Source of the DNA: Eukaryota sp. TZLM1-RC
Lineage: Eukaryota > Protista > Metamonada: BaSk clade
Direction: 5' to 3'
Assembly: GCA_040285825.1 (NCBI GenBank)
Contig: JAUPSS010000004.1
Coordinates: forward strand, 1,716,550-1,780,549
Length of the DNA stretch: 64,000 nt
Part shown: piece by piece, positions 8,182 through 58,869 of the stretch
Numbering within the stretch: the first letter of the stretch is position 1
How the letters are laid out: every line of letters begins with the position of its first letter
Notes under the pieces: generated by a model
Told to the model about the DNA's origin: nothing
Databases searched by the model: none
What the model saw: only the letters and a program-made list of their open reading frames with translations
Made by a program: the position numbers and the translations under genes

Positions 8182-8260
8182 TGTTGCCTAAAGTCTATTG
8201 TAGTAAAGAAAAGTCTGATTTATTTTCTATTCATATTATATAAGCCTTAGGGCGCCAACA
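8182..8260 (-). repeat. 3' LTR (79 bp)
   Basis: Direct repeat of 12024-12103 with TG...CA ends. Confidence 0.92.
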
Positions 8261-11200
8261 CTGCTTCTTCCCTTTTTCAAAATAAATCAGTTTATATGAA
8301 TATGAAATAAAAACTATGTACAAATAACGAAATAACTATAATAAATGCCTATAATCGATATACTATAAATAATCGATATAAACTAAGAATTAGCTCCTTT
8401 TCCTAATTTTACTACTACGTCTAGGCTTCTTAGAAGGCGTAGACTCATTGGAGGTACCTTGTCGTCGACTAGTGGTACGTTTTCCCATTTTCTTATTATC
8501 CTTACTAAATAACTTCTAAGCTTCTGAGTGTTTAACTGAATGGAGTGGCTCTTCCGTTGTCTCACCGCCAAACCACTGAAAAGTACAGAAACTACTGAAT
8601 CAGAGTGGTATTCTGAGAGGATTTTCTCTATAACGTGTTTTTCGGAATCGCCTGCAGCGACTGCCTTGAAGAACTCAATGTCCTGTGGATTTTCTGCGTT
8701 ATAGATTTTGCAATCTTTCTTGGCAGCTTTTAATTCTGTGCCAGTAAGATTCTTCAATAATAAAGTGGTTCTGGAAGAAAGGTCAATAACTAAATATGGT
8801 CAATTCCAAGATCCATACAATTTATTATTTTGCTTGGTTTTACGTAAGACGTAGTCACCAATATTAAATGCTAAAAAACACAAATTAGTATTATCTACTG
8901 CAGACGGAGTATTTAATGTTTGGTGACGCTCTGCTTCATCCCTTTTTTCTTGTAGACGAGTGTTTTTCATTTTGGTGTCATCTAATAAGGGGATATTAGT
9001 TTCAAATTTGGATAAATAACCTAATATATTAGCAGGGTCTGTTCTTGGGCTAATCGAAGAACCGAACATGAATTCGTATGGGGTAAAACCAGTTTTTCTG
9101 CTTTTAGTAGAATTTATTAATAGTTGGAATATAGGTACGTATGTAGACCAATTTCCGTAATCGTTGAAATCTATTAATAGTTTCCTTAAGCATTGAAGAA
9201 CGTCTCTATGTTTGCGTTCTACAAGTCCATTACTTTCTGAATAGTGGGGAATTGAGTTACTTATCTCAATTGCTAATCTGTTACACACTATTTTGAAAGT
9301 CTCATTGGCGAACTCAGGTCCATGATCACTATGAATTAACATAGGTATGCCAAAGATAGCGCAAACATTCCAAATTAAGGCATCTGCGGTTTCTAAGGCA
9401 TTAGGTTCTTTTAAAGGGACTAAAATTGTATATCCAGTAAAAGAGTCTAAATATACTAATAGATATTTATTTCCTTCGTTGTTAGAATTTAGGGGTCCAA
9501 TTGTGTCGACGTTTAATCTGGCAAAAGGACGATCTGCCTATAGAGATCCTGTGGAAGGTGTTTTTGATCTTTTAACTGGAGCCGTTGTTTGACAAGTTGG
9601 GCATCTTTTGACATGATTAATTAGGTCCTTTCTCTTATTGGGCCGGTAGAAATCGCTTTTGGATAGTTTGTGCAAACTATCTTTTTTGCTAGAGTGACCA
9701 GATTGAACCAAACCATGTATTAATAATAGTGCCTGTTTTCTGAGGCTCTTTGGAATCAAAATTTTATTTTTATTATTTTTCCAAATTTGAGTATTTTCAT
9801 CTAGAATTGCAATTTCAAATAAAGAGTCATTGTTGTTTTTGGCTATTTGTTGTTCAGATCTTATTTTAGAGAACCAAGAAGAAAAATGGGTAAGTCTTGG
9901 TGTCTACTTAAAGATGAAATTGATGGGATATCTTCGAAGTCCGAATCAGAATCATCCTCTAATGGAGGTATCTCGTAATTCGAAAGTAAAGTATCTGGTA
10001 TGTTTATACTACAAATAGAAGGAGTTTCCTCGTTTTGATCCAAATCAATATTTCTCGATAACATATCTGCACAATGGTTATCTTCACCAGGTTCATGGAC
10101 TATGTCAAAGTCGAATTCAGATAGTATCGGCAGCCATCTCTTTACAATTCTATTTTTCCCTTGGGCTGTGGCCAGGAATGCAATGTTTTTGTGATCAGTG
10201 AAAACTGTTAAATGTCTAGTTAATAGGTAGCTTTCTGAACAACTTTCAGTTAAGATCAAGAGTATTGCATATAGTTCTTTCTGTAAAGTGGACCATTTTC
10301 TTTGTGTTTCTGTAAGTAATCTACTATAGAATGACAAAGGTTTCACTTTCCTTTTATTTAGCGGGGTTCCTTCAGGGGAGTAGGGTTCAATTTCTTGCCA
10401 AATTACGCCTCCTACTGCTACATCTGAAGCGTCAGTACTTATTAATACTCGCTTGCCCGGAGCTGGTAATTCAAGGGGCATGTGGTTTACTATTAAGTCT
10501 TTTATTTGATTTAAGTAATCGTCATGCTTGCTAGTCCATTTGATAATTCTAGGTTCTCCTTTTATTAACTCGTTAATGGGAGCTATTAATTCAGCAATTC
10601 CAGGAAGCCAATCTCTTATGTAGTTAATTGATCCGACCAAGGAGCGAACCTCTTTCACTGTTCTTGGTCTGGGTATTTTCTTAAGGGCTTCAATTTTTTT
10701 CTTGCTGATGAACCTAGTTTTGTTCTGGAAGGTACTTCCGCATATGTCAATGGGGTGTTTGGCTGTTACGAATTTGCATTTTCGTTCACCAATGTTGACC
10801 CGTCTTTTCCTGGCGCATTCGAGGACTCTTTGTAGTCGTTTGTAGAATTCATCGAATGAAGTACCGACTATTATAATGTCGTCTATGTATATGACAACGC
10901 CGTCTATTTGACAAATTTCCATCATTACATTATGAAATGCTGCTGGGATATTCTTTAAACCCAAACAGCCTCTTTTGAACATAATGGACCTTCCAGGTAT
11001 TGAAATTGATGTTTTTTAATATCTGTTTCTGCTACATTCATTTGCCAGAAAGCTTTTGGTAAATCAAGTGTGGCAATGTAGTCAGCTCTGCTTAAAAATT
11101 TTAATATGTCACTAACACCATTCTTGTTGAGCCCAACCTTCCAAGGATCTCCGATGTGCTGGTAATTCTCTCCTAAGCGAACTACATAGGCACCCTTGAC

Positions 11201-12023
11201 CTCCCCAAAGCCTTTTGGCAACTCAAAATTGCTGAAAAGGATTGGCAGAAAACGGCCCTGAGCATTCCCGGCAAAAGCATCATGTTCAAACGTGCAGCTT
11301 TTGGCCTCAAGAATGTCCCAGCCGTTTTTCAAAACGTCATGGCTGACCCTTTATGAGTTCATTCCTTTCATTGAGGGGAATTTCCAATACCTTTTGGGTA
11401 TCCCCAATCATTCCGAGGGTCTGGAAACCAACGTTTCTGCCTCTTTTTTGAATGTAACTCCATAAAGGGGGAAGCTGCTCGAACAGACAGAAATCTGTTG
11501 GTTCGAGGTAAGCCTCTGCATCCTCTCTTAATAACTTGTAGAACCCGTCGGAAGAGTCGTCTTCTCCCTCCATTTCATCCAGTTGAGATTGAATTTCTTC
11601 ATATTCTCCTAATGGGGAAGACGTGTCTAAGGTGGGATTTCCATCCGTTTTTTTTTGAGACAGGTTCTGGAATTGGGAGGGGAGAAGGAGCCGGGTCCGT
11701 TCTCGTTGCCTCTTCCATTGCTTTGAGGGGAGAGGGAGCTGAGTCCGTTCTCGTAACCTCTTCTGTTGCTGAAGATGGAGGGACCTCGTCCACTCTTTCA
11801 TCTTCTTCTATTTTAAGGGAGGGGGAGGTGGGATCCGGGTCCGTTGCCTCGTTACCCTCTATATCATGTATATGTGTCGCTGGTACCTGCTGCATAATAA
11901 GTGGGGGATTAGAGTCAGAGATATCTTGTTGGAAGATGTCTGACATGCTGTAAAGTGTCTGGGGATGTTCACTAATGCTGAAGTTATGGTATACCTTTTG
12001 ATTTTAAAATGGCCAATAATTAT

Positions 12024-12103
12024 TGTTGCCTAAAGTCTATTGTAGTAAAGAAAAGTCTGATTTATTTTCTATTCATATTATAAAAGCCTTAGGGGCGCCA
12101 ACA
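12024..12103 (-). repeat. 5' LTR (80 bp)
   Basis: Direct repeat of 8182-8260, followed by the GATG TSD. Confidence 0.92.
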
Positions 12104-19609: not shown

Positions 19610-20640
19610 TTTTGGTGGAAAAAAAGTTGAATCAAATGTATGTATGTTGTTGGATTTTAGCAATGCATTTAGCTAAAACATTTATTTATTTTTCAGGACA
19701 AAAGCTAATGACTACACTATGTCTTCAAATGGTGATAGTGTCCGTATAATTTTATCACCCCATTCAAACGCAACAAAAGAGAGTTTGTCTGGAGAAGCCT
19801 TGGCTGATAAGAGATCCAGAGGGAAACTTGATTACTACGAAACCACTCGGATTAGAAAACATACCCTGCAAGCCCAGGTTGAACGGCCAAGACCTCACCA
19901 GAAAGCAAAAGCTACTGAGTGGCAGGCACCTGATGACGAAATGGAAAAGGTGTTCTAGGCCATCAACCACTCAAATCTATGTGGTTCCAGCATTGGAACA
20001 CGTTCAGGGCCAACTGTATCCAATATCTTCTTGGCATCAAAGTGACGAAAAATCAATCACTCCGCTTCACTGACCCACTCATCAATAGATGTTTATGACG
20101 AGCAGAAATTGAACCATTATCTGCTTGAAATATCAACTATCGGTGACTATAAGGACTATGAAGGTAATAACGTAAGACGATCATTGCTAAAGCAGCAATT
20201 ATATCTGAGTGGTCGAAAAGCATTGAGGAGAAACACATTGGACTTCTTTAAGAAAACAGTAAAGATTCAGCTCCATTATCAATAAAGTGAAAAAATTTGC
20301 AGACGGTCGAGAAGCAAAACTGTGGTTTGGCAATGGAGGTGGTGGTACATCACGTCAAAAAGTGAAAACACCACGTAAGGCGTTTCTCAAGTTGTTACAA
20401 TGTTCATTTGCTAATGTGAAGATCGGAAATGAATATATGACATCTGCAAAGGTAAACTGCTGCAAGATGCCACACCAAAAGATCTATCGGGAAGTTGATG
20501 GTGAAATTAAAGTTCACAACACCTATTTCAGTTGTCCGGAATGTAATCAAGTATGGTCTAGAGACATTTCTGCATCACTAAATCAGCTAGAAATTGCAAT
20601 TTGTGAGCACTACTATGGAACAAGACCAGAAGCATTCTAG
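19610..20640 (+). pseudogene. Fanzor1 (TnpB-like RuvC nuclease) C-terminal remnant, family Fz-1
   Basis: SNGDSVRIIL (TDG-like), WFGNG, GNEYMTS (RuvC-II), CC...CPEC zinc finger, WSRDISASLN (RuvC-III), GTRPEAF. Contains stops and frameshifts; RuvC-I is not recognisable. Confidence 0.8.
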
Positions 20641-20742
20641 AGACCACAAAGAAACTAGCTCCAAAGCTACGAATTGTTCTAGAGGAGAAATAGGCTCACT
20701 GAGATTGGTGGCCAATTATTCGAGGATTCTAGAACGTCTGTG
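20633..20742 (+). ncRNA. candidate Fanzor omegaRNA scaffold / element right end
   Basis: Directly follows the Fanzor C-terminus. Stems TAGCT/AGCTA, GTTCTAGA/TCTAGAAC, CTCA/TGAG and ATTGG/CCAAT. A second copy lies at 33397-33506. Confidence 0.6.
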
Positions 20743-20870
20743 GACGATCTCACCAAGAATGAAAGTTCTTGGAGTAAGATTGAATGATGCTTGCCGAAAG
20801 TATGCATTTCAAATAAAATCCACAGAACTCATTTCATCTTGCATCAACTCATCCTTAATACTATTATCAC

Positions 20871-22389: not shown

Positions 22390-24285
22390 GGGTCTTGCTA
22401 GTTTAAAATCTCTTTTCTTTTAATAAAACTTTGCGTGCAAATCATGAACAAAAATTTTACAAGACTAAGATGTGTCATGAAGCTTCTTTATTGCTTCAGT
22501 CTTTTCTTCTGAATTTTCCGTTGCCATCTAGAGCTTTAGTGGAACAGGATGTATGGTGTCTTTTTATGACTGCCATCACCACTGGTTCTTTTCCACAGCC
22601 ATCCACCTCTAAAGGCCAACGCCAATTACTCCATATCTTATACAGTGGATTTTTTCCTGAATGCCCACAAGACAGGTCTCCTGTTTCTACATGGGAAAAT
22701 TCTTTAGTTCCTTATAGAAATTCATTCAATATTTTCCTCAATGATTGGCTGCAGTCACAGAGATATAATTGTACTAATAGAAAAGGACTCTTTCTTTACC
22801 TTGCTTCTCGGGCTCGTCAATTGGCATCTAATATTAAGACAAGTCAACTTAAAATTTGTCAATCCTGGACAAAAAACTTCATTCGTGCTCATTGTAGAGC
22901 CATGGATAAAGCGAATGTCTTTTACAATTATCTTCTCTCTCTTATACCAGATGAACCCTTAGCACCTCTAGAAGCTAATGCAATAACAGAAGGTAAGCAA
23001 CCCGATGAAGTAGTTATTCATTCTATTCTCGAACCCTACATCAATTTCCATTTTAATAATACAAGAAACAGATTCTTTCTATCAAATGCATGTAGTTTTA
23101 TCTTGAATCTTTTTAACAGATTTCCTGCTACTGCTACTTTATTATCTTCAAGTGATAGAATCCCCTTTTTATTAAGGAAAATTGGTGAACTTTTTTTCTT
23201 TAATCTTAAAATTTCACAACACTTACTCACTTTTTTTTCTCATTTGCATTGCTGGAAGAAATTTGAAATAATACCTTGAGCTTCTCATAAAGGTTCTAAA
23301 ATTCTTGAGGTTCCTTACGTGTCTTCCACTCTGTGAAAAAATTTCCACTTATTGAAGGATCATCTTCCAAAACAAAGTTCATCAAAAATACATGTCTGAA
23401 ACGAATATTTAAACAAAGCTCTTACCAGAAATTTAATATCAACAGAAAAAAGTTTGAACAAAAGGAAAAAATAATGACTCAAAAAACACAGATGAGCTGG
23501 ATGAATCACCAAAGATGAAAAGAAGATTAAAAAAAGAAATGAAACGTGACCCTCATGCCAACAAAACCAGAGAAATACAGTTGAAGGGTACTAAGAACAT
23601 TCGCCGTCAAAGACGCAGACACCCAGTCGAAATTGTACCTGAAAGACCCCTTATCGGCATTGATCTGGAACAATCTAGATTATGTGGTTACTTCTTGAAT
23701 GATAATCATGTGGAGTTATCCCTTGTACAACTGGCAGAATACATGACAGAACCTTAATCTAGTGAACATTCTCCCAACCAATATTCCGTTCAAAATTTCA
23801 ACCAATATTTGAACCATTGGAAGTAGGTCAGGAGGAAAATGTACTTGAAAAGTAATCGCCAGAAATGGAAAATAATTTAATTTGATAACCGCAGACGAAA
23901 AGAGAGACGGTTCCGAGAGAGTCTCAACAAATTTCAAAGGCTGGCTGGACATCCTGAAAAACTCTATCTTGCCGTGGGTTCTGCTAACTTTCCGTCTCAT
24001 TGCCGAAAAGTCAATCGATATGGATCAGCAAGGGCTTTCAGAAAATGGTTGTGTTATCAAAAGGACGGGAAGCACTTGTCAACCAGTGAATTTAATACAA
24101 GCAAATTGTCCCGTTGTTGCATGGACGAGAATATTCAAGCAGGCTCATGGCAGATGTGTGTTTGTGCTGAGGGTCAAATAGTATATGACAGAGATAATTG
24201 CGCTGCAAAAAATATTCAAATCAAGAAGACAGCGGAATTGTGGCCGGAAAGATACATTTGCCCAGAAGCTCTGTTTAGGAGATGA
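22390..24285 (+). pseudogene. near full-length Fanzor1 pseudogene, family Fz-2
   Basis: SLKSL...MCHEASLLL N-terminus, LIGIDL (RuvC-I), AVGSANF, SEFNTSKLSRCC (RuvC-II), YDRDNCAAKNI (RuvC-III), CPEALFR. Several stops and frameshifts. Confidence 0.8.
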
Positions 24286-33011: not shown

Positions 33012-33356
33012 CTAAACCAACAATAAAATTTCCTGGCCCCCAATTACTGTTCCATCGATCACATCAATCATTTTCGGATCTCTGATGACATTATGAAGAA
33101 TGCCCCCATAACCATCATAAGGTTTATGTTTAACAGTTTCCATGAATTGGCCATTGTTAATGAATTCAAATAATTTCATCGTTAAATCTGTATTCCTTAA
33201 ACAATAAACTGCAACTGCAGTTCGTCTTTGGGTTGAGAAACAATGTGAAAAGGAATCATCTTCATGAACCTTCCGATACTTTACAATATACTGAGGACCA
33301 ATGTCAATTTTACTTTCACCTAATAATATTTTAGAAACTGTTTTTGATTTGCGTGG
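33012..33356 (-). pseudogene. fragment: PolB-type exonuclease ExoIII running in frame into a Fanzor-like N-terminus
   Basis: Manual translation (not in the ORF track): KTVSKILLGESKIDI...TQRRTAVAVYCLRNTDLTMKLF...ETVK...ILHNVIRDPKMIDVIDGTVI. Confidence 0.65.
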
Positions 33357-33396: not shown

Positions 33397-33506
33397 CACA
33401 GACGTTCTAGAATCCTTGAGTAATTGGCCACCAATCTCACTGAGCCCATTTCTCATCTGAAACAATACGTAGGTTTAAAGCTAGTTTTTTGTGGTTTCGG
33501 GAACGC
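33397..33506 (-). ncRNA. detached copy of the Fz-1 right end / candidate omegaRNA scaffold
   Basis: Its reverse complement aligns with 20633-20742 and ends at the same TCTAGAACGTCTGTG. Confidence 0.6.
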
Positions 33507-38791: not shown

Positions 38792-40189
38792 AGTGTCTTT
38801 CAATAAATTTTATTATGACTTCTGGACCATAGCTTTTTGTATTGTGTATTTTTAGGGTCACAACCATATCTCAATAGCAAGTACATGGTCGGAATTAAAA
38901 TAAACAATACAAATACAAATAAGAATGCAGCAATTAACATGGTGAATCAATTTGGGTCGGACATATTGCAATACTAAATAATGGAAACCGAAGGTGAAGT
39001 TGTAATTTCGAGGTTCTGGTGTTATGTAGCAGAAAATTGATGACTGGAAAGTTGATCTATGTTGTTGACCAGTCACAACCGGTGGCTTCAAAAAAATTCA
39101 AATTTAAAGTAGACAGAAAATCAAATTTTATTGAACTACAACAGTTAACAAAATAGAATCAGAACTAGGCTGCATTATTCAACTCTGAGTTACTTTGACA
39201 TAATCAATATTCATGTATGTATTGTTACATATTATTTAACAAACTACTCGCGTTAGGCAGGCTCTTGAAAAACTGCCTGGTCTTTCAATTATACAATAGC
39301 TATCATTAGATAAAGATAGTTATGAATGCAAGTTTTCACACAAAATGCAAATGGAGTAAGGTGAACTATGAACTCTGAACTCAGGTAAAAGAGTTCTGGA
39401 GTCGAGAACTAGAGTTTTGGACACCCCTGATGATGACACTATCTCTTTGTAAATCCCATCAGAACGGCTCGTCAAATTTAAGCCTGTATGGACCAATGAA
39501 TTTCTATTGTTATATAGAAATTTGACAGAATGAATTTCAGTACATCATTTTTGATTGTTGGTCCCTCTGAAGCTATTTTGAAGGGAGAAATAGGAATTGT
39601 ACAGGCTTGAGTATTTATTGTTGTTTTATTCTAAACATACCGTCGCATTTAATGGGAGCGAAATTGGAAAGAATAGGCATTTAAAAGAGGTGATAGGAAC
39701 AAAATTTCCTATCACTGGAGACTCAACAACCGACATCTGCGACACATTATACTATTTTCAAGAGAGAAAATCAGTTGGAGTCTACTATTTCGATAGATGT
39801 ACATTCAGTAAACAGTTTTGACAAGCACAAGTCGAAAAAGACACTGACAAGACAACTAGATTTCAAAGGTAACTGGCAGTAAACAATCCATTATTTTTGA
39901 TTATTTTTTGTTATGCGCTGTTCCTTCTGCCGAGTTGAATAACATACCATACGTACCTTTCCTTTGAGGGCACAACAAGTAGCCGCCGACCATGTTCGAT
40001 GTATTGGTCATGGTGGTCCGCTTGATCCACCACCCGCAAACCTCTATATAAACTATAACTGGGGGCGATTTGATGGAAGAAGCTGAAGTGCATGTAGCTA
40101 TTTGTTCTAACCCATTTGGTTCAGTGAGTCCGCTACGTACAATGGAACGTATTGTTGTACCAGAGAGAAAACAGCATAGAACACATTTC

Positions 40190-41616
40190 CCCGGTTTTGT
40201 GGTCTCAACTCTCTGCTCACACCTGATGCAGTTAACGCCATCTCAATTGACATTCCAAAAGTCACTGAAATGTGCCACGAGGTCTCTTTGCTGTTGCAAC
40301 TGTTTATTCTGAATTTTCTTCTATGTAGACGACCAACACTGAAATTTGATGTTTGGTATCTATTTATGACTATAACAACCAAGCAATATGTTTTAAACAT
40401 GGGCAAATCAAAACGCCGAAGACAGCTGCTTCAAATTTGGTACAATGGTTTCCTTTCAATTATGCCAGAAAAGGCCAGTTTTGGCTCCCAAAAAGCCCGC
40501 AATATTGCCACGTCCATTATGATAAAGAAATCAACATCATCCATCAGCAATTTTATCTATTTTTCCATAACTGTGTGACATTAAACAACAGCTCCTTGGT
40601 AAATGTCAAGGCCATCACAAGTTATTTATCTATACACTCAAAAGTCCTTGTTCCACATTTCAAATCATTTCTGCCAAGAATGTGTTCATTTTAGTTGAAA
40701 AATTGTATAAGGGCTTTTTGTAGGGCACTGGATTCAAAAACTGACTTCCAAAATGAACTGATTTATTTCTTTTTCAATCAACGTACAAATTTTAAATTCA
40801 TTACAGAGGTTTATCTGAACCTCTTATTCGATTTCTATCCTACAGAAAAAGTGATGTTTCAGGTATTGTGCTACTTGAACAACTGCTTAACGAATTTCCC
40901 ATTGTGCAAAAAGTATTGACGGGATCAAATCATGGGGATCTCTCCAGTCAGCAAATTGATGACCTAATGGGATTCAACATGCGACTAGCCGAGCATCTTA
41001 GTACAGAAATTAGATATTTCTGCTTCTGTTGGCGGAGGTGTAGAATCATGTCATTAACATCCCACAAGGCTAGATTTTTACAAGTTAGTGACATCAGATT
41101 CCGGAATGAGGGCGAATTTTCTATTGTAGAAGATCAGATCTACAATTCAATTCATTGTACTGATGTGAATCTGAAAATGGTATATAAAATTGTCCTCATT
41201 CATTCTTTGGTATCAATAATGTTGATGAGAAAAGGAAGTACAGTAAGATAACAATTAGAACTAATGCTACGGGATTACCTTGTCTTTTTTTAGTTACCTT
41301 GTCTGAATTTAAAGAAAGGGCACCAAGGATTAGAAGAACCAAAGCAGAGATGAGCAATGATTCGTCTGCTAATAAGATCACTGAAAGTGTAGACCCGAAG
41401 GCTGATGCAAAGAAGAGGAGACCTTTGAGGTCTGCAAAACCAACCCCATGTGAGCACAATCCAATTTATCCTGTTGTTGGAGTTGATCTGGGACAATTTC
41501 GTTTATGTGGTTATTGGGGTGAATTGGAGAAGGCTTTGTTCCTTCTATCAGAAGGAACATTGAACAATGATGATTATTTAACCATGATGATGAATATTTT
41601 TAAAAGACAACCTTAG
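40190..41616 (+). pseudogene. Fanzor1 pseudogene, 3'-truncated, family Fz-2
   Basis: CGLNSLL...MCHEVSLLLQLFILNF...DVWYLFMT is homologous to the 22431 ORF. RuvC-I VVGVDLGQFRLCGY is present; no RuvC-II/III. Confidence 0.72.
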
Positions 41617-48755: not shown

Positions 48756-49144
48756 TATTATTGCAGTTATTGAAGAGATTTGACGTTTTTCAGAAATGTT
48801 CAGGAATTCAATGAATTAGCACTGTTTTTCAATAAAATCAGAAAAGTTATAGCAATGCAACAAATATATGAAGATGTGACGGCATGAAAGCATTAGTAGG
48901 TAAAGATAGTACAACGAAAATCACATCGTTCATTGTTTCCTAACATCTTCAGCATGCATATTTTATGTCATCAACGTTAGTTGTGGTCATTTCATCAAAG
49001 AAGTCTGACAAAAGACAACTAAACTACGGTCACATATTCACAACAATCAATGAGCATTCAAGAATACTCTACAATGGCAAATGACAGATTATGACAAAGC
49101 AGCGAATGACATCATGTATTATAGTGCTCACATGAAAAAGCAGT

Positions 49145-49226
49145 GCGGTCGTCGTCTAGTGGTTATGACGTTGCTTTGCTAAGGCAATGGGCTTTGCCCG
49201 CGTGAGTTCGAATCTCACCGATCGCG
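49145..49226 (+). tRNA. tRNA-Ser(GCT)
   Basis: Acceptor GCGGTCG/CGATCGC, anticodon loop TT-GCT-AA, long variable arm GGGC-TTT-GCCC, T-loop GTTCGAATC. Confidence 0.95.
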
Positions 49227-49447
49227 TATTTTCGTCGTTTCGTTATATTCCATTTAGGTAGAAAAGTCTACGTAAGAGTATCAAAGCTTCGGTTATATCC
49301 TTTGAACATTGTTTAATTCCATTAACAAAATTATTTGAGTTTTATTGGGCCAGATTAATTACCCTGAAGAATTGAGATGTTCGGGATCAATCAAAGACAT
49401 ACAATCTTTCTACGTGGTCTTTTACAATTGACAAAATGTTGGAAAAA

Positions 49448-49529
49448 CGCGATCGGTGAGATTCGAACTCACGCGGGCAAAGCCCATTGCCTTAGCAAAG
49501 CAACGTCATAACCACTAGACGACGACCGC
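49448..49529 (-). tRNA. tRNA-Ser(GCT), identical second copy
   Basis: Exact reverse complement of 49145-49226, followed by a T-run terminator. Confidence 0.95.
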
Positions 49530-50211
49530 ACTGTATATTGAAGTGAGTGAGCACTATAATACATGATGTCATTCGCTGCTTTGTCATAATCTGTCATTTG
49601 GCATTGTAGAGTATTCTTGAATGCTCATTGATTGTTGTGAATATGTGACCGTAGTTTAATTGTCTTTTGTCAAACTTCTTTGATGAAATGACAACAATTA
49701 ACGTTGATGACATAAATTATGCATGCTGAAAATGTTAGAAAACATTGAACGAAGTGATTTTCGTTGTACTATCTTTGCGTACTAATGCTTTCATGCCATC
49801 ACTTCTTCATATATTTGCAGTATCCATTAATAATCAATAGCATTATCTAAAGGTAGACAGTCTTCCCAATTGATCAAAGGTTTCAATCAGAGGTGTTCAT
49901 AACCAGTGTCATACAACTGGTTTGACTCTAAATTACAAATTTGATTATATAATTTGATCACCAGATGATTTAGTAAAGTTGGAGTTAAAGAGTCAATGTT
50001 TCAACCCAATCAGGGTAATCAGTGGAGCAATACCTGAAACAAATATTAATAGATTCACAAGTCTGGTGAAAAAAAATAATTTATTGCGACGAACGACCAG
50101 TTTAAAAAATATTTCAAGAAAAAGGATAAAACACAAATTATTGTACAAAAAAGGATTAAATTAGATAACGAAAATAATTCAAAACCACAAAAATAAAGTG
50201 TTGAACAGCAG

Positions 50212-52069: not shown

Positions 52070-52346
52070 AGTTGATATTTCTGATAAAACTGATTAAATT
52101 CACATCTAATGTGGAACAGACACACGTAGTCGGAAGGTGCAGTGTGAGCCATAGGTTCTTGGTGCGGGCCACAACAGAAGTGAACAAAGGGAGCAGTAAT
52201 ACCAACTTGCTCATAAATTCCCTGAATGAAGGTACTGAATTGGGCTTTTCACGGCTGCTAGACTTCAACTACCTTGATGGGCAAGTAGGTTGGTGGGAAA
52301 TTCCCATAAATACACGATCTATTTTTGTGCGGAATAATTACAAAAA
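52070..52346 (-). ncRNA. candidate omegaRNA region downstream of Fanzor Fz-3
   Basis: A GC-richer non-coding stretch right after the Fanzor stop, with short inverted repeats (GGGAATTTCCC, CTAC...GTAG, GCCGTGAAAAGC). Boundaries are uncertain. Confidence 0.4.
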
Positions 52347-54530
52347 CTATCTACTACACAGATACTGAGGCCTTTCATTACCACTCATCCTCGCTTCAGC
52401 AATCGCAAACATATTCAGACAAGCCAACTTATTTCTATTGAAAAGCTTTGTTGAGCCTTTGTTACTGAGTTTGCAACTCTCGCTATTACAAGCTAATAAA
52501 CCATGACATGTAGTAACAGGAGTCTTTTCTCTTCTATAGAATCTGGGATTTGTTACTCTCAAAAACGTAGCAACCTTTTCAAAACAATCAGGACATTTTG
52601 CTGAAGTGAAAGCTTCATTAATCATCAATACTTCAAATCCATTTCTTTTCAGAAATTGAATCCATCCAATGCCACGAGTAGGTCTCTGATGTTTCAAATT
52701 CTTAAAACCATTTTTACCATAATCACCCATTAGAATTATAGTGTCTTTTGGATTGCCAAACTGCTGAACAAGGCTTTTCAATAACCAACTTTCAGTCTTT
52801 TGCTTGTGAATAAAAGCTTGCATTTTATGAATGCTCCACAAGTCAAGACTGTAAAAGTCAATTGTCAAAAAAACTTACCGAAGTTTGGCAACCACAAAGT
52901 TGGAAAAATCTATAAAAGTTGCTGAATTAGCAGCAAACAAGGACAATTCGGTGTTTGCATCTTCAATTGTCATTTCGTTAGACTCTCTCAATTGGTTCCT
53001 GTCGTAATCCACTTCAGTATACTTTGTCGCCCATCGTTTTTGTTTTTCATTCATTCTATTTTTCAAAGACCAGGACATCTGAGTCATTCTCAACCATTTG
53101 TACTTCGTGTCTTGATTCATCACCCGACTATTTCTTTGATGTTCAGTTTCATGTTCAGGCACCATGACTAGTTCTTGATCAGTCTTTTTACTCCCAAAGT
53201 ATAATAAATCACGTTTTCCAGGATCACAAACAACAATTAGTTTGTCTTGAAAAGCATCAACATCGACATCATCAATATATAAATCAGAAATACTAGCCTT
53301 GTTGTCTGGCTTACATTTCTGACCTTGTAAATCCTGACGAACAAATTCTACTGCAATATTGAATCCATCTGTGTGGATAATGTTGTTGAATTTTTAGCTC
53401 TTCTGTTTGAACATTGGTTGGTGTAAATCTAGAATATTAGACCAAAAGTCAAATTGCTCAGGTGGTTTGAATCTATGAACTTGGGCTTGTGTATTTGCCA
53501 TTTTTGATCTCTGATTAGGCAACAAATCGTCCATCAATGTTTGTCTAATAATTGTCCATATTGTTCTTGTATCAATAGGAAAATCAACAGGGCCTACAGT
53601 GGTTGAAACAGGAGAAATATGATACGGTTTTCCCTCTCTACTGGAGATATATTGGGCAATTGTAATTGCTGGTTTTAGGAATATTTGAGGATCTTTTTCA
53701 ACAGCGTCTGCAAGAAAATGTATAGCCACTGGAAAAATGTTGTCAACTAAATTCTCGTCACTGACCAAATTCTCAATTTGACAGGTTAATGGTTCAATAA
53801 GACCTTCAAATATGTCTCTAAGTTCATTATTTCTAATATCATGTTGTTCATATAAATCAAAAAATTCTTCATTCAGAAGGTCTGAAATATTTTCAGGATG
53901 ATGAAACAAAGAACTCAAGCAATCTCTATCATCAACTAAAAACAAGTTTTTGAATTGACGAAGCCTAAATCTATATAGTGAAATAATTGTAGATAATGGC
54001 GTTGAGTATTCACCCAGCTTGTGCATTTCTGCTAACACGTTTTCCACATTTACTTTGTCAAAGTAAACATTAATAAATCGATTAATATGTTTTTCATAAA
54101 TTAGTTTCAAATTATTCTCAAAATTGGCAAACATTACTGGGGCCATATACTCAGGTGGTCTACTGAAGCCATCAGTTGGAAATTGTGGAAAAAACTCAGG
54201 CATATATCTCAAATGGTCTACATAACTCAATGTTTTGTTCAATTTTTGTTGTTCAAAGGTGGTCGATAATCTATAATCTCCTTCACCATAAACAAAGTTT
54301 TCAAAATCCCCTGGAAATGCACTTTTTGGTTTCACCATTTCTGGCCCTTAATACTCAGATGAAATATAACGAATTCTGGCCATTAATGATTCATATAATT
54401 TGACAGAAATTCGTGGTGTTATAAAATTATGTTCAAAACAAGACTGTAAATACAGCTTTAAGCAACATGTGGTGTGAATTCGTAACTGTTGAAATTTTAC
54501 AGCAGTTTCTCTCAATTTGAATATCACATT
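52347..54530 (-). pseudogene. Fanzor1 nuclease, family Fz-3; one frame with three in-frame TAA stops
   Basis: LRETAVK...IHTTCCLKLYL, FENNLK...HINRFIN, IDTRTI, FNNIIHTDG, LYIDD, VCDPGKRDLLY (RuvC-I), MGDY, INEAFTSAKCPDC (RuvC-II), HGLLAC...C, FNRNKLACLNM (RuvC-III D>N), ERPQYLCR-like end. Confidence 0.9.
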
Positions 54531-55180
54531 TGAATGTTTATTTTCTTTTCATTTATCATTTTATATGCCAGATTGCCTAATCCATGTCCGTAGTGTATTT
54601 TAATAAATTTTTTGGCAAAAACCCAAGTATCTAAAAGAAAAAAGCCTTTTTCCCTGATGACAGCTTCCCTCCATCTTGGTGAAAGTTGATTGAGTACATC
54701 AATTGTTGCATCATCTCGAACAGTGGGAAATGGTGAATCAAAATAATTTAATCTATTTTTTAGAACCTGTAAATCAAACTGCATTAAATAGTGATTAAGA
54801 AAACAATGAGGTTGATGATTACCAATAATGTTTAAAAACCTACAAAGCAAGGTTTTTTCGTCAGAGAAAATTTCTGCCTGAACATGCATATCAATGTCTG
54901 GTAATCTGACTTGAGGACTCATTCTTAATAGAAGTGAATATTTATTCTCCAAGAAGAAATTATGGCGATCAAACTTACCAACAACAATCGAAATTAAAAA
55001 CACTTTTTGATCTGAAATCCACTCACCCACTTGCTTATCAGTTTTCTATTTCAAAAGATTTGCACTCTCCTTTCTCTTTTTGTTGATAATCTCATAAGAA
55101 GGGAGAAATTGGCCATCATGATTTTGATAAAGATGACCATCCTGATAGGTTTCAAGATCAAAGCACATAACAGTGGAAAG
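54524..55180 (-). pseudogene. family-B DNA polymerase-type 3'-5' exonuclease domain (ExoI, ExoII) upstream of Fanzor
   Basis: VMCFDLETY (ExoI), FSDEKTLLCRFLNII...HYLMQFDLQVLKNRL (ExoII), FLLDTW...LGNLAYKMINEKK. The two track ORFs are in the same frame, split by one TAG at 55046-55048. Confidence 0.78.
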
Positions 55181-55456
55181 ATTTTGATTTGAGGTCATTG
55201 ATTTGAATTGAATCAATGGATCAGGCTTGAAGCCACTACGATTGTGCTCAATTCTTTTGACCATACTCGATTTCAATGGTTTTTTTGTCAAAATCATCCT
55301 GTTCTCGATATTCAACATTGTATTCTTAATACAAATTTCTCGGTTCAGTGCTTTTTGTTGTTTTTTTAGCTTACGTTTTGATGTTTGTTGGTCAAAAATT
55401 GCATTTCTCATAATTTTTGATGGAGGAGTTGATTCAAAATTAGATCTTCTCTTTCT

Positions 55457-55498
55457 GGGACCAGCATTTGCTTCAACATCTCCATCCATTGTTAAATC
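55457..55498 (-). other. 2A/StopGo-like peptide DLTMDGDVEANAGP
   Basis: Matches the D(V/I)ExNPGP consensus except P>A (GCT, one base from CCT), preceded by DLTxDG as in iflavirus-type 2As. Confidence 0.6.
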
Positions 55499-55569
55499 AA
55501 CAGTAAATGGGTTTGTTGATAGAAGATGTTGGCAGCTTCTGGATTGAAAAGATAAACTATAAACATAAT

Positions 55570-56012
55570 AACCAAACTCAACATTATCGAAATAACAATT
55601 TAAGACACAACATCCCATATCTAAAGTGCAAGAATCTAAACCACAAAAATGAACAAACTCATAAACATCAAAATAACAATGTAAAACAAAACATAAACAA
55701 AAGAAACTTCCCACATTTATAATACAAGTACGTAAATTACAAAAAACAACAAACTGAAAAATATCAAGACAACAATTCAAAACAAAACACAAACAAGAAA
55801 AACATTCCATATTCAAAGTGCAAGTACCTAAACCAAAACAATCAACAAAATCAAAAACATCAAAGTAACAACAATGTAACACAAAACACAAACAAGAACA
55901 ACATCCCATATCTACAGTACAAATAGCTAAGCAACAAAAAACAACAAACTCAATAACATCAAAATAACAATTCAAAACAAACCACAAAGAAGAACATACC
56001 ATATCTAAAGTG
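55570..56012 (-). repeat. ~4.5 tandem coding repeats of 31-33 aa, Cys-rich and hydrophobic
   Basis: Consensus TLDMxCxSCLCFVLNCYFDVFEFVxFCxLxxC. Length differences are whole codons. Confidence 0.75.
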
Positions 56013-56707
56013 ATTAGCACCATGGTTGATTCAACAGCACCCATATCATGACTCACATGATGCCTCAAAAAAGTGCAATACTCTACCCCCACGGAAGCAT
56101 CAGAACGACGATTTCGATAAGAAATCGAGGCTCTGAGCTTCAGTTTGTTCCTGTAAAACAGGATGACTGTTCCCGACTGAGGAGTTCGGGAAGAAGTACT
56201 CGGCTGTTCTTTGAAGAACAGGTTGAAGGAGGAAATGGGAACTGAGTCCGTAACCTCGTTATCCTTGTTCTCCTTTTGCTGCATGATGTTAGAAGAATGG
56301 GAAGAGTCAAGATAATCTCACTGTCTGACACGATGTCTGACATGTTGATTGCAATTTCCAATTGATTGCTAATTTCCACAATGGTATCAAATGCCTATCG
56401 ACTGTATCTCTACTAGTGGTCATCAACATCAGCTCGATTTACGCTCTAGCTGTTCCGGTCGTTGTTACTCCGTCTAATCTCTATGTTTTTTCCAGCTTCC
56501 TTCTCCTTCCTTTACCTCTTGTTCTCTTCCCATTCAGCTATCTCAACAATTCTTCCTTTTCCTCTCCCTCTCTGTTTTGACGGGACCTAAACAAATGCTT
56601 GTTTCCCTACTTTCTACTCTGTCCAAACCTGAGAATTTCACGACCAGTTGGTCTGACAGTTCAAAGGTACTACTCTGCTTATAACATAGTTCAAATCACC
56701 ATGACCT

Positions 56708-58566
56708 CAATAACCTCTCTATAACTTCTCGCTATATAACTTCTCACTCTCTATAAATTCTCGTTTTTTCTGGTTCCCTTAGTCATTTATAATTGTAACT
56801 TCTCGCTTTATAACTTCTCTCTTTTTCATGTCACAACCACCAAAACCGAAACCAGTAGAGATAGGTGTCAAACAGTCAGCACTCCTCATCCAATATGCTG
56901 ACGAAAATCCTCATCTAAAGAATACTGCTTTGGCATCCTGGGCTAAAGAGACTTTCAACTTGCCCTCAAAACCCCATCGTACAACTATTGGAAAGATTTT
57001 GAAGCGACGTTCACAAGTTCTTGAGCAAGCTCTTGCCCTGGGCAAAAATTTGAGACCATCTGCAAAGAGAGTTCGTTCTGTAAAACACCCTGACCTTGAT
57101 GCTGCTCTTGCACTGTTTGTTGAGTCAAACTCAGCTCTCATGACAATCACTGAAGATGTTATTCTAACAGAGGCAGAAAAGCTTTATGAAGTCCTGGATA
57201 TTCCAAAAAGCGACCAGTTACAACACGGTGATGGCTGGTTCGAATCTTTCAAACAGAGACATGGAATAAAAGTTCTTACTCCTCACGGACATGCAGGTTC
57301 TGTTGATGAACTGGCTGTTGATGACTTTCGAAGATCTCTGGAACCATTATTGTCTCAGTACAAATCTGAAGACATATGGAATTTAGACGAAGCTGCTCTT
57401 TTTGGAGGAAAAACACGTCTGTTAAAACTCACACAACTCAATCATACGTTTCTGGTTTTAAAGATTCTAAGCAAAGAATCACTCTGGTTTTTTGTGTAAA
57501 TGCAGATGGGTCAGAGAAAATGCCTCTCGGTATCATCAACAAGTCTCAAAAGCCTCGCGGTATGAAACCAAACACTGCCAATTCACTGAACTTATTGTGG
57601 TATGCTAACAAAAAGGCATGGATGACTTCATCAATTTTTACCGATTACTGTAAGAAACTGAATGAAAAAATGAGAGCAAAGGGAAGACAAATTCTGTTGC
57701 TCATTGATAATGCCCCATCTCACATTTTAACTGAAAATTTGTCTAATGTGAGGACTGAGTTTTTGTTAAAGAATGCCACTTCACACATCCAACCACTCGA
57801 TGCTGGAATTATTGCAGTGTTTAAGCGCTTTTATTCAAAACATTTTCTAAGAAAAATATTGCCAATTATTGTTACTGAAAGAGTCACACAGGACGAAGCC
57901 CAAAAACGTATAGGCATCGTTGACGTTCTCCCCATTATCTCCTCTAGTTGGTCTATGGTGACCAGAGAATGTATTTCCAATTGTTGGAGGAAAGTTGGGC
58001 TATTGAACTGTCATGATAGAGATTCGAATGAAACCGGACAGATTAACGACAATGAAACTAATTTTGTAGAAGATTTGAACGTAGATCTTGAGGAATTTGA
58101 TGAAATTGTGGCTGAAGATGAGGACATCGCGACCGAAGGTATACTTTCGGTTGAAGAATGCTTGGATACTGTTCGAGACTGTGTTCTGGACGGATTGTGT
58201 GAAAATGACATAAACGAAGACGAGTCAAGACCAAAAGTTTCCAGAATAGAAGCATACAATGCGCTACAGATTATCAAATCTTATGCTATGGACAATTTTG
58301 ACCACAAACATCCTTCATTGTATACTCTTAATGAAGCAGAGAGTGAGTTAGAAACCATTAGACTAAAGAGGAAGAAACAAATTCCGTTGATGAACTTTCT
58401 AACACCTAAGTTGAATGAAATTGCATCTGAAGTTATTGATATCGAATAAACTTGTAATCTCAATAGGTTTAATGATAGTAATCAAGGAATTGTATAAGTT
58501 CTCGCTTTCTATAAGTTCTCGGTTTTAGTTGGTTCCCAAGACCGAGAAGTTATAGAGAGGTTACTG
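56708..58566 (+). mobile_element. pogo/Tigger-type (CENP-B-like DDE) DNA transposon
   Basis: 24-bp TIRs CA(A/G)TAACCTCTCTATAACTTCTCG, TA at the right end, and subterminal TATAACTTCTC repeats. Confidence 0.9.
56828..58449 (+). CDS. pogo transposase, one frameshift in a T-run near 57400
   Basis: CENP-B HTH (GWFESFKQRHGI), WNLDEAALF|W, KQRITLVFCVNADG, KAWMT, LLIDNAPSH, IQPLDAGII. Confidence 0.88.
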
Positions 58567-58869
58567 TAGTTGAAGTCATTAATAGTATTAATAAATTCAA
58601 AAAGCCATTGTTATTGGTTTATGGCAACTCAAAATATACATGTTTCTATCCATGCTACTAAATCTTAATACTAACTATGAACATTCTTTCCCACACTCAC
58701 TGATCGTTTCGGTACCATTGGTCTACAATTATCATGAATATGAGAGTACGCAATCCTGTACAAGTTTAGCGCACTGTTAACATCCATATCTCAATAAATA
58801 AATTGTGGCAACCTTTTTTTATTAATAAATTATATTTACAAACGCAAACAAAACAACTAAACAAAAATC

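Follow-up and report, generated by a model that had tools for sequence, protein, structure and literature searches.

Can a Fanzor1 nuclease and the proofreading exonuclease of a family-B DNA polymerase (PolB) belong to one natural protein? The question is raised by a locus on the minus strand (56284–52347) of a 64,000-nucleotide stretch of contig JAUPSS010000004.1 (the window; assembly GCA_040285825.1) from TZLM1-RC, the type of Skoliomonas litria, a soda lake protist and free-living anaerobic metamonad (PMC11603281). The initial annotation had joined minus-strand open reading frames into two interrupted frames and read them as a decayed polyprotein in which an exonuclease precedes a Fanzor1 body. 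Translation, with stops read through as X and the pieces searched individually, returned frame A from 56284 to 54524 with a single TAG (55048) and frame B from 54530 to 52347 with three TAA codons (54350, 53396, and 52877), and all annotated motifs were found in their order and positions. The decay is borne out as well: besides its four in-frame stops, the copy has lost 190 nt at 54531/54530. With these stops, the loss of exonuclease motif ExoIII by a frameshifting deletion, and changes in its 2A and ExoII motifs, the window copy cannot make the protein. It is a dead member of a multicopy, non-autonomous family of mobile elements in Skoliomonas, here called exo-Fanzor, to which it adds a single data point.

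Sister copies settle the nature of the frame break. Seven further S. litria loci (L001–L003, L005, L006, L013, and L014) share 88–94% of nucleotides with the window copy over most of their length. In L014, identity falls to 77% in the exonuclease region, and this locus (predicted protein P0006) carries an unrelated leader ahead of its own 2A. The 190 nt that are absent from the window are present in L001, L002, L003, and L005, where they encode ExoIII (YGLHD/YGLYD) and the first Fanzor strand in frame. The deletion junction (54530..54531, minus strand), which lies at an imperfect microhomology of ~9 nt, removes ExoIII, the linker, and the first WED strand and shifts the frame. Since the sisters hold the missing stretch, the break is a deletion and not the seam of two genes, and the annotated loss of ExoIII and of the first Fanzor residues is thereby accounted for. 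An alternative genetic code or introns behind the stops were ruled out, as the sisters have sense codons (TAT, TAT, CAA, and ACA) and open frames; a GTAAG..TACAG stretch at 52878 is intron-like, but its removal would delete conserved Fanzor residues.

Single frames that run through both domains, which the annotation had proposed to seek, occur in S. litria and in a second species. P0011 and P0010 (S. litria) begin with ExoI and reach the REC region of the Fanzor in one frame, P0041 (L006) comprises the leader, the 2A, and the whole exonuclease up to just before RuvC-I, and P0025 is open from the leader to the Fanzor stop, although ExoI has been lost from it in frame. Both domains also share one frame in P0048, P0077, P0085, and others of Skoliomonas sp. 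TZLM3-RCL, where a total of nine predicted proteins contain ExoI–III and RuvC I–III in a single chain. At the DNA level, one TZLM3-RCL locus (L007) is a single open frame of 1312 codons, and direct translation of two others (L008 and L009) yields 940-aa proteins from ExoI to the stop. Decayed copies with both exonuclease and Fanzor are also found in GEM-RC1. The families share only ~30–55% identity, yet ExoI D/E, ExoII D, and ExoIII Y/D are kept. Their upstream modules vary between Cys repeats, unrelated leaders, and, in some, an Ulp1 protease, which is missing from the window's own family; the 2A motif recurs at the leader end in most families extending to that point. In contrast to leader and Ulp1, which come and go, the exonuclease is in every case attached directly to the N-terminus of the Fanzor by a constant short joint. 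A single-ORF architecture of leader, 2A, Ulp1 in some families, basic linker, PolB exonuclease, and Fanzor1 is almost certain. In some NCBI models (L007:7938–11873, P0076, P0021, and P0023), parts of exo-Fanzor are merged with a DEAH helicase or a reverse transcriptase (RT), possibly by in-frame gene capture or as a model artefact.

The exonuclease of the window copy (54531..55171, minus strand) is assigned to the family-B DEDDy 3′–5′ enzymes by Pfam, by profile, and by a sister-copy model. The annotation had expected a PolB-exonuclease profile match, and the piece 54527–55045 indeed matches DNA_pol_B_exo1 (PF03104) above the gathering cut-off (E 2.8e-6). A profile built from 15 exonuclease sequences finds Pol delta first (2.4e-12) and then herpes polymerase (3.5e-11), so that by sequence comparison the domain is Pol delta/herpes-like. 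An AlphaFold2 (AF2) model of a sister domain (predicted local distance difference test 83, predicted template modelling score (pTM) 0.84) aligns with family-B exonuclease domains at Z 13–17, the top 18 VIA-align rows being family-B polymerases throughout, while ExoI, DnaQ, TREX1, and RNases score Z 11 or less (first non-family-B entry, 10.8). ExoI DxE, ExoII NxxxFD, and ExoIII YxxxD are present in sisters and relatives. In the window copy, ExoI reads FDLETY (55162–55145) and ExoII NHYLMQFDL (54796–54770), with NHYL where the sisters have NHNL, so that the motif N is replaced by Y; ExoIII is deleted. Across the family, the domain shares ExoI–III and PF03104 with the proofreading domains of Pol delta, herpes UL30, Pol epsilon, and RB69/T4. 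Unlike these polymerases, however, exo-Fanzor has no palm, fingers, or thumb, its exonuclease being joined to an RNA-guided nuclease instead; as annotated, no polymerase match follows the exonuclease in any copy.

The remainder of the protein is a Fanzor1 body with REC, WED, RuvC, and zinc finger parts (52347..54530, minus strand, with the three in-frame TAA codons). Its piece 52350–52874 matches PpFz1 (1.6e-21) and SpuFz1 (8.9e-17). Frame B contains HTDG (53375), CDPGKRD (53228), NEAFTS (52619), CPDC (52595), CNSESC (52490), and RPQYL (52373) before its final TAG at 52349. The counterparts of SpuFz1 D383 and E541 are found in DPG and NEAFTS, the glutamate lying six residues before CxxC (NEAFTSAKC); such an alternative RuvC-II glutamate defines Fanzor1 (PMC10711439). 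At the position of SpuFz1 D606, all copies of this first lineage, across three species, have N, giving the window copy the triad D (DPG, 53225), E (52616), and N (NRN, 52433). A RuvC-dead reading of the D-to-N change was dropped, as GtFz1 works with a D-E-N triad and D606N increases SpuFz1 activity (PMC11423790). By analogy with GtFz1, which uses the same triad, the family is predicted to be an active nuclease.

Both domains are recovered from one chain when the full AF2 model is searched, a structural check of the kind foreseen in the annotation: Foldseek returns Fanzors first (E 5e-24; TM by target 0.77) and then Pol delta (1e-6). The model places the ExoIII helix (220–242) ~8 residues ahead of the first WED strand (251–257), a joint that would leave little room for a processing site. 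Compared with SpuFz1, PpFz1, and GtFz1 (PDB 8GKH, 9CF0, and 9CER), exo-Fanzor has the same WED/REC/RuvC/zinc finger body, the RuvC-I DPG, the rearranged glutamate before CxxC, and a conserved right-end tail, with D-E-N as in GtFz1. Unlike them, it carries an N-terminal PolB exonuclease of ~245 aa behind a 2A and a variable leader, and its size is 940–1900 aa versus ~640 for SpuFz1. As judged from homology, fold, and motifs, exo-Fanzor is a Fanzor1.

Exonuclease and Fanzor are both kept under purifying selection in the element family, to much the same degree (dN/dS ~0.2). Pairwise Nei–Gojobori dN/dS ratios (nonsynonymous to synonymous rates), which include neutral post-insertion decay and are not mutually independent, amount to 0.16–0.25 for the exonuclease, 0.15–0.33 for the Fanzor, and 0.5–0.7 for the leader. 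The low ratio of the exonuclease indicates that it is maintained as an enzyme within the element. Separately, the exonuclease of L006 (9123–9885; P0041) lies at dS ~0.7 from its sisters, compared to ~0.13–0.17 in the Fanzor part, which shows that modules are exchanged between subfamilies.

A second, divergent lineage carries the same combination. Its trace in the window is an exonuclease-to-Fanzor junction fragment (33015..33356, minus strand; E 1.5e-51 to the L003:10973–12916 element, which itself matches PF03104 at 1.9e-15). The lineage (L003:10973–14583) has an Ulp1-like region, a more Pol delta-like exonuclease, and a Fanzor with canonical NRD (D-E-D); a first-lineage copy precedes it by ~200 nt in L003. 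In a tree of 15 Fanzor bodies, three of them short and with no SpuFz1 or GtFz1 rows, the seven exonuclease-bearing rows group at 97/99, while the D-E-D lineage is unplaced. In the same tree, a single origin of the exo-Fanzor lineages is neither rejected nor demonstrated (p-AU 0.17). Possibly, the exonuclease was acquired twice in Skoliomonas.

Eight S. litria copies share one end point (window 52294), 53 nt past the stop codon and behind two hairpins, and in 8/8 a pyrimidine follows. This conserved 3′ tail (52294..52349, minus strand), a fixed right end with terminal CCCA, is a candidate omegaRNA scaffold; TZLM3-RCL families show the same hairpin layout with different stem letters, and the tail has no Rfam match. 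By analogy with SpuFz1 and SfAV (PMC10432273, PMC10711439), the hairpin tail is likely the scaffold and the flank the guide, the candidate guide of the window copy being 52293–52275.

The left ends, by contrast with the fixed right end, are mosaic, with at least three different 5′ modules among the copies, and one module contains a ~120-nt segment that likewise lies behind another Fanzor family. This segment recurs at 20713–20826 and 33397–33506 of the window and at L001:7305–7423 and L005:7569–7687; it follows one Fanzor family, precedes the exo-Fanzor fragment at 33 kb, and forms part of the 5′ module in two exo-Fanzor copies. In L001 and L005, a chromodomain-like peptide (IKWKGW) precedes it. 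In nine copies, inverted matches from end to end did not exceed those of shuffles, and no target site duplication (TSD) was found. Contig coverage is zero beyond 52288 and near zero above ~56600, thus stopping at the element's ends, contig depth at the element not being copy number. No empty site could be reconstructed, and neither a transposase in or beside any copy nor an HUH gene was found.

Hence, exo-Fanzor differs from cut-and-paste DDE transposons (Spu-1-like) and from SfAV elements in having neither terminal inverted repeats (TIRs) nor TSDs. The lack of TSDs and the hairpins fit Helitrons and Replitrons, and A|TC-like 5′ starts occur in L006, L013, and L008, though not in L001/L005; the 3′ end, however, is CCCA and not CTRR as in Helitrons. 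A fixed 3′ end with variable 5′ ends also fits retrocopies of elements without long terminal repeats (non-LTR), but in contrast to the local non-LTR elements with restriction-like endonuclease (RLE), there is no poly(A) or AATAAA-type end and no TSD. Copying in trans is probable, either by rolling-circle (HUH)-like replication or by a retro mechanism; with one end fixed and captured sequence at the other, rolling-circle copying fits best and retroposition second.

As to the function of the fusion, we lean, on balance, toward RNA-guided cutting followed by 3′–5′ trimming of the cut strand. Skipping at the 2A would free exo-Fanzor from its variable, disposable leader, and the protein would then enter the nucleus and bind an omegaRNA made of the hairpin tail and ~15–20 nt of right flank. 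Its GtFz1-like D-E-N RuvC would cut matching empty (element-free) sites. SpuFz1 cuts the non-target strand 16–17 nt from the target-adjacent motif (PMC10432273). After the first cut, the attached exonuclease, from a family that prefers single-stranded 3′ DNA ends, may degrade the displaced non-target strand in the R-loop and also fray the cut 3′ ends. The break would no longer be religated cleanly and would instead lead to copying from the element-bearing homologue or to deletion, outcomes that would help the element to persist and spread. The more specific proposal of a natural, compact single-chain “cut-and-chew” nuclease, in which a D-E-N Fanzor1 contains a PolB exonuclease, possibly acquired twice, that would act in cis to degrade the cut strand, is put forward more tentatively, as a chance a little short of even.

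Several observations weigh against cutting followed by trimming. Among the S. litria copies examined (15/42 main-cluster members listed), none is fully intact. The full-length model reaches a pTM of only 0.53, and the exonuclease could not be placed relative to the R-loop. Trimming in 3′–5′ direction gives no 3′ overhangs for homologous recombination, a 3′–5′ enzyme being unable to perform classical 5′–3′ resection, so that resection by the host is still required. Moreover, fusions of TREX1, TREX2, and T5 all impaired MmeFz2 editing (PMC12923547). On the side of the guide, folding of the hairpins gives modest z-scores (window, −1.1; sisters, −1.8 and −2.4), and RNAalifold gave no consensus on the plain tail alignment.

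Alternatively, the exonuclease might serve the copying or insertion of the element: at a break made by the Fanzor, it would shorten 3′ flaps or overlong ends of the rolling-circle or retro intermediates rather than destroy the target. We regard this as unlikely, albeit worth serious consideration: the single fixed end, the mosaic 5′ ends, the missing TIRs and TSDs, and the pyrimidine after the 3′ end all agree with it, Helitrons are known to carry Fanzors (PMC10711439), and at Helitron/Replitron insertions a helper function has been proposed (PMC10288648), yet the failure to find a transposase or to reconstruct an empty site speaks against it. It is rather improbable that the exonuclease is independent cargo of a polyprotein, carried along by the Fanzor while acting against host defence or removing DNA derived from the element. 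Although 2A and Ulp1 are typical mobile-element cargo, LTR elements are known to have DnaQ-like exonucleases as accessory domains (PMC6338049), and the L006 exonuclease stems from another subfamily, the constant joint to the Fanzor is not what exchangeable leader and Ulp1 modules display, and the window's family lacks the protease. Slightly less probable still is a role in omegaRNA maturation, with the guide being trimmed at its 3′ end to mature length. The guide, as read-through 3′ flank, would need trimming, and DEDDy enzymes also include RNases. The closest folds and profiles, however, are PolB DNases (Z 13–17), well above the DEDD RNases (Z under 10), and ordinary Fanzors mature their omegaRNA without such a domain (PMC10432273). 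Finally, chance juxtaposition, a gene-model artefact, or a neutral relic of a polymerase gene, suggested by the break of the window copy exactly at the junction and by chimeric NCBI models (P0076 with helicase, P0021 with RT), is scarcely credible and refuted by open single frames in the DNA, occurrence in three species, retained catalytic residues, and a dN/dS of ~0.2.

In agreement with the annotation, which knew of no such natural Fanzor, the literature search (most subscription papers lying outside it) found no description of this architecture. The word “exonuclease” is absent from the main text of the main Fanzor papers searched, full-text matches being reviews and engineered fusions. We found no report of a natural Fanzor or TnpB with a PolB exonuclease and no relative outside Skoliomonas: within the limits of their sensitivity, a search of 1.84 billion representatives and length-limited word searches returned no exo-Fanzor outside the genus, a metagenome scan only plain Fanzors among the matches listed, and IMG/VR and phage scans none. 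Engineered fusions (TREX2-SpCas9; TREX1, TREX2, or T5 with MmeFz2) likewise tether an exonuclease to a guided cutter; exo-Fanzor, in contrast, is natural, evolved under selection, and PolB-derived. The analogy is double-edged, since the MmeFz2 fusions reduced editing (PMC12923547). Among eukaryotic mobile elements, a 2A also precedes the enzyme in non-LTR ORF2 (PMC3708506), and LTR polyproteins include a DnaQ-like exonuclease (PMC6338049); DEDD exonuclease and Ulp1 are thus cargo shared with such elements. Unlike retroelements, the exo-Fanzor element has no RT, integrase, or APE, and the partner is a Fanzor.

If true, cut-and-chew would alter the repair outcome toward larger deletions or homing and would represent a new functional class among TnpB/Fanzor/Cas12 effectors. 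As the lineage has kept a selected second nuclease on the protein, one point mutation would suffice to test whether end processing after the cut contributes to the way in which Fanzors help their elements. Moreover, intact natural copies (940 aa, ExoI to stop) could show productive coupling of exonuclease and Fanzor where engineered fusions failed.

Upstream of its two domains, the window copy, which spans at least 56596 down to exactly 52294, is preserved as follows. A 5′ non-coding leader common to sister copies (56285..56596, minus strand) aligns by blastn at 90–93% with L001 and L005 and stops at 56596, the left boundary; L001/L005 have ~270 nt more of it. Frame A starts with MQQKENK at 56284 and opens into the N-terminal leader peptide (55499..56284, minus strand), a variable, weakly constrained module with approximately four Cys-rich hydrophobic repeats of ~32 aa (56012–55609; 96-nt period, 4.2 copies). 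The peptide has no Pfam or Atlas match, no Gypsy origin was seen among the matches listed, and unrelated leaders replace it in P0006 and in TZLM3-RCL families. Antisense coding of the repeats was ruled out, the plus frames being full of stops. There follows the 2A/StopGo-like motif DLTMDGDVEANAGP (55457..55498, minus strand): relative to the in-frame consensus D(V/I)ExNPG/P, the window copy reads NAGP, while the canonical NPGP is seen in most of its sisters and also in several of the divergent families. The basic linker (55166..55456, minus strand) contains the stretches RKRR and KRKLKK (PRKRR at 55459, KRKLKK at 55378), which may act as nuclear localization signals.

The surroundings are rich in other mobile elements. 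A pogo/Tc1-type transposon (~56707–58568, plus strand), with HTH_Tnp_Tc5 and DDE_1 in two overlapping frames and ~24-nt TIRs, adjoins the left end of the exo-Fanzor element. Upstream lies the 3′ tail of another Fanzor family ending in GTTGCCA (58622–58799, minus strand; L005:7241–7420), from which the pogo element separates exo-Fanzor in the window, whereas in L005 the two adjoin directly; the pairing may reflect a shared composite or targeted stacking. Both Fanzor families end in CCA. Further decayed TnpB/Fanzor-like families with no exonuclease match occur at 19700–20830, 22407–24282, and 39900–41250 (all plus strand). The window also holds a Gypsy-type LTR element with very short, 99% identical LTRs of ~71 nt (8182–12094), many fragments of RLE-type non-LTR elements, and a large inverted repeat (48861–49817) with ~390-nt arms, which contains two identical tRNA genes on opposite strands.

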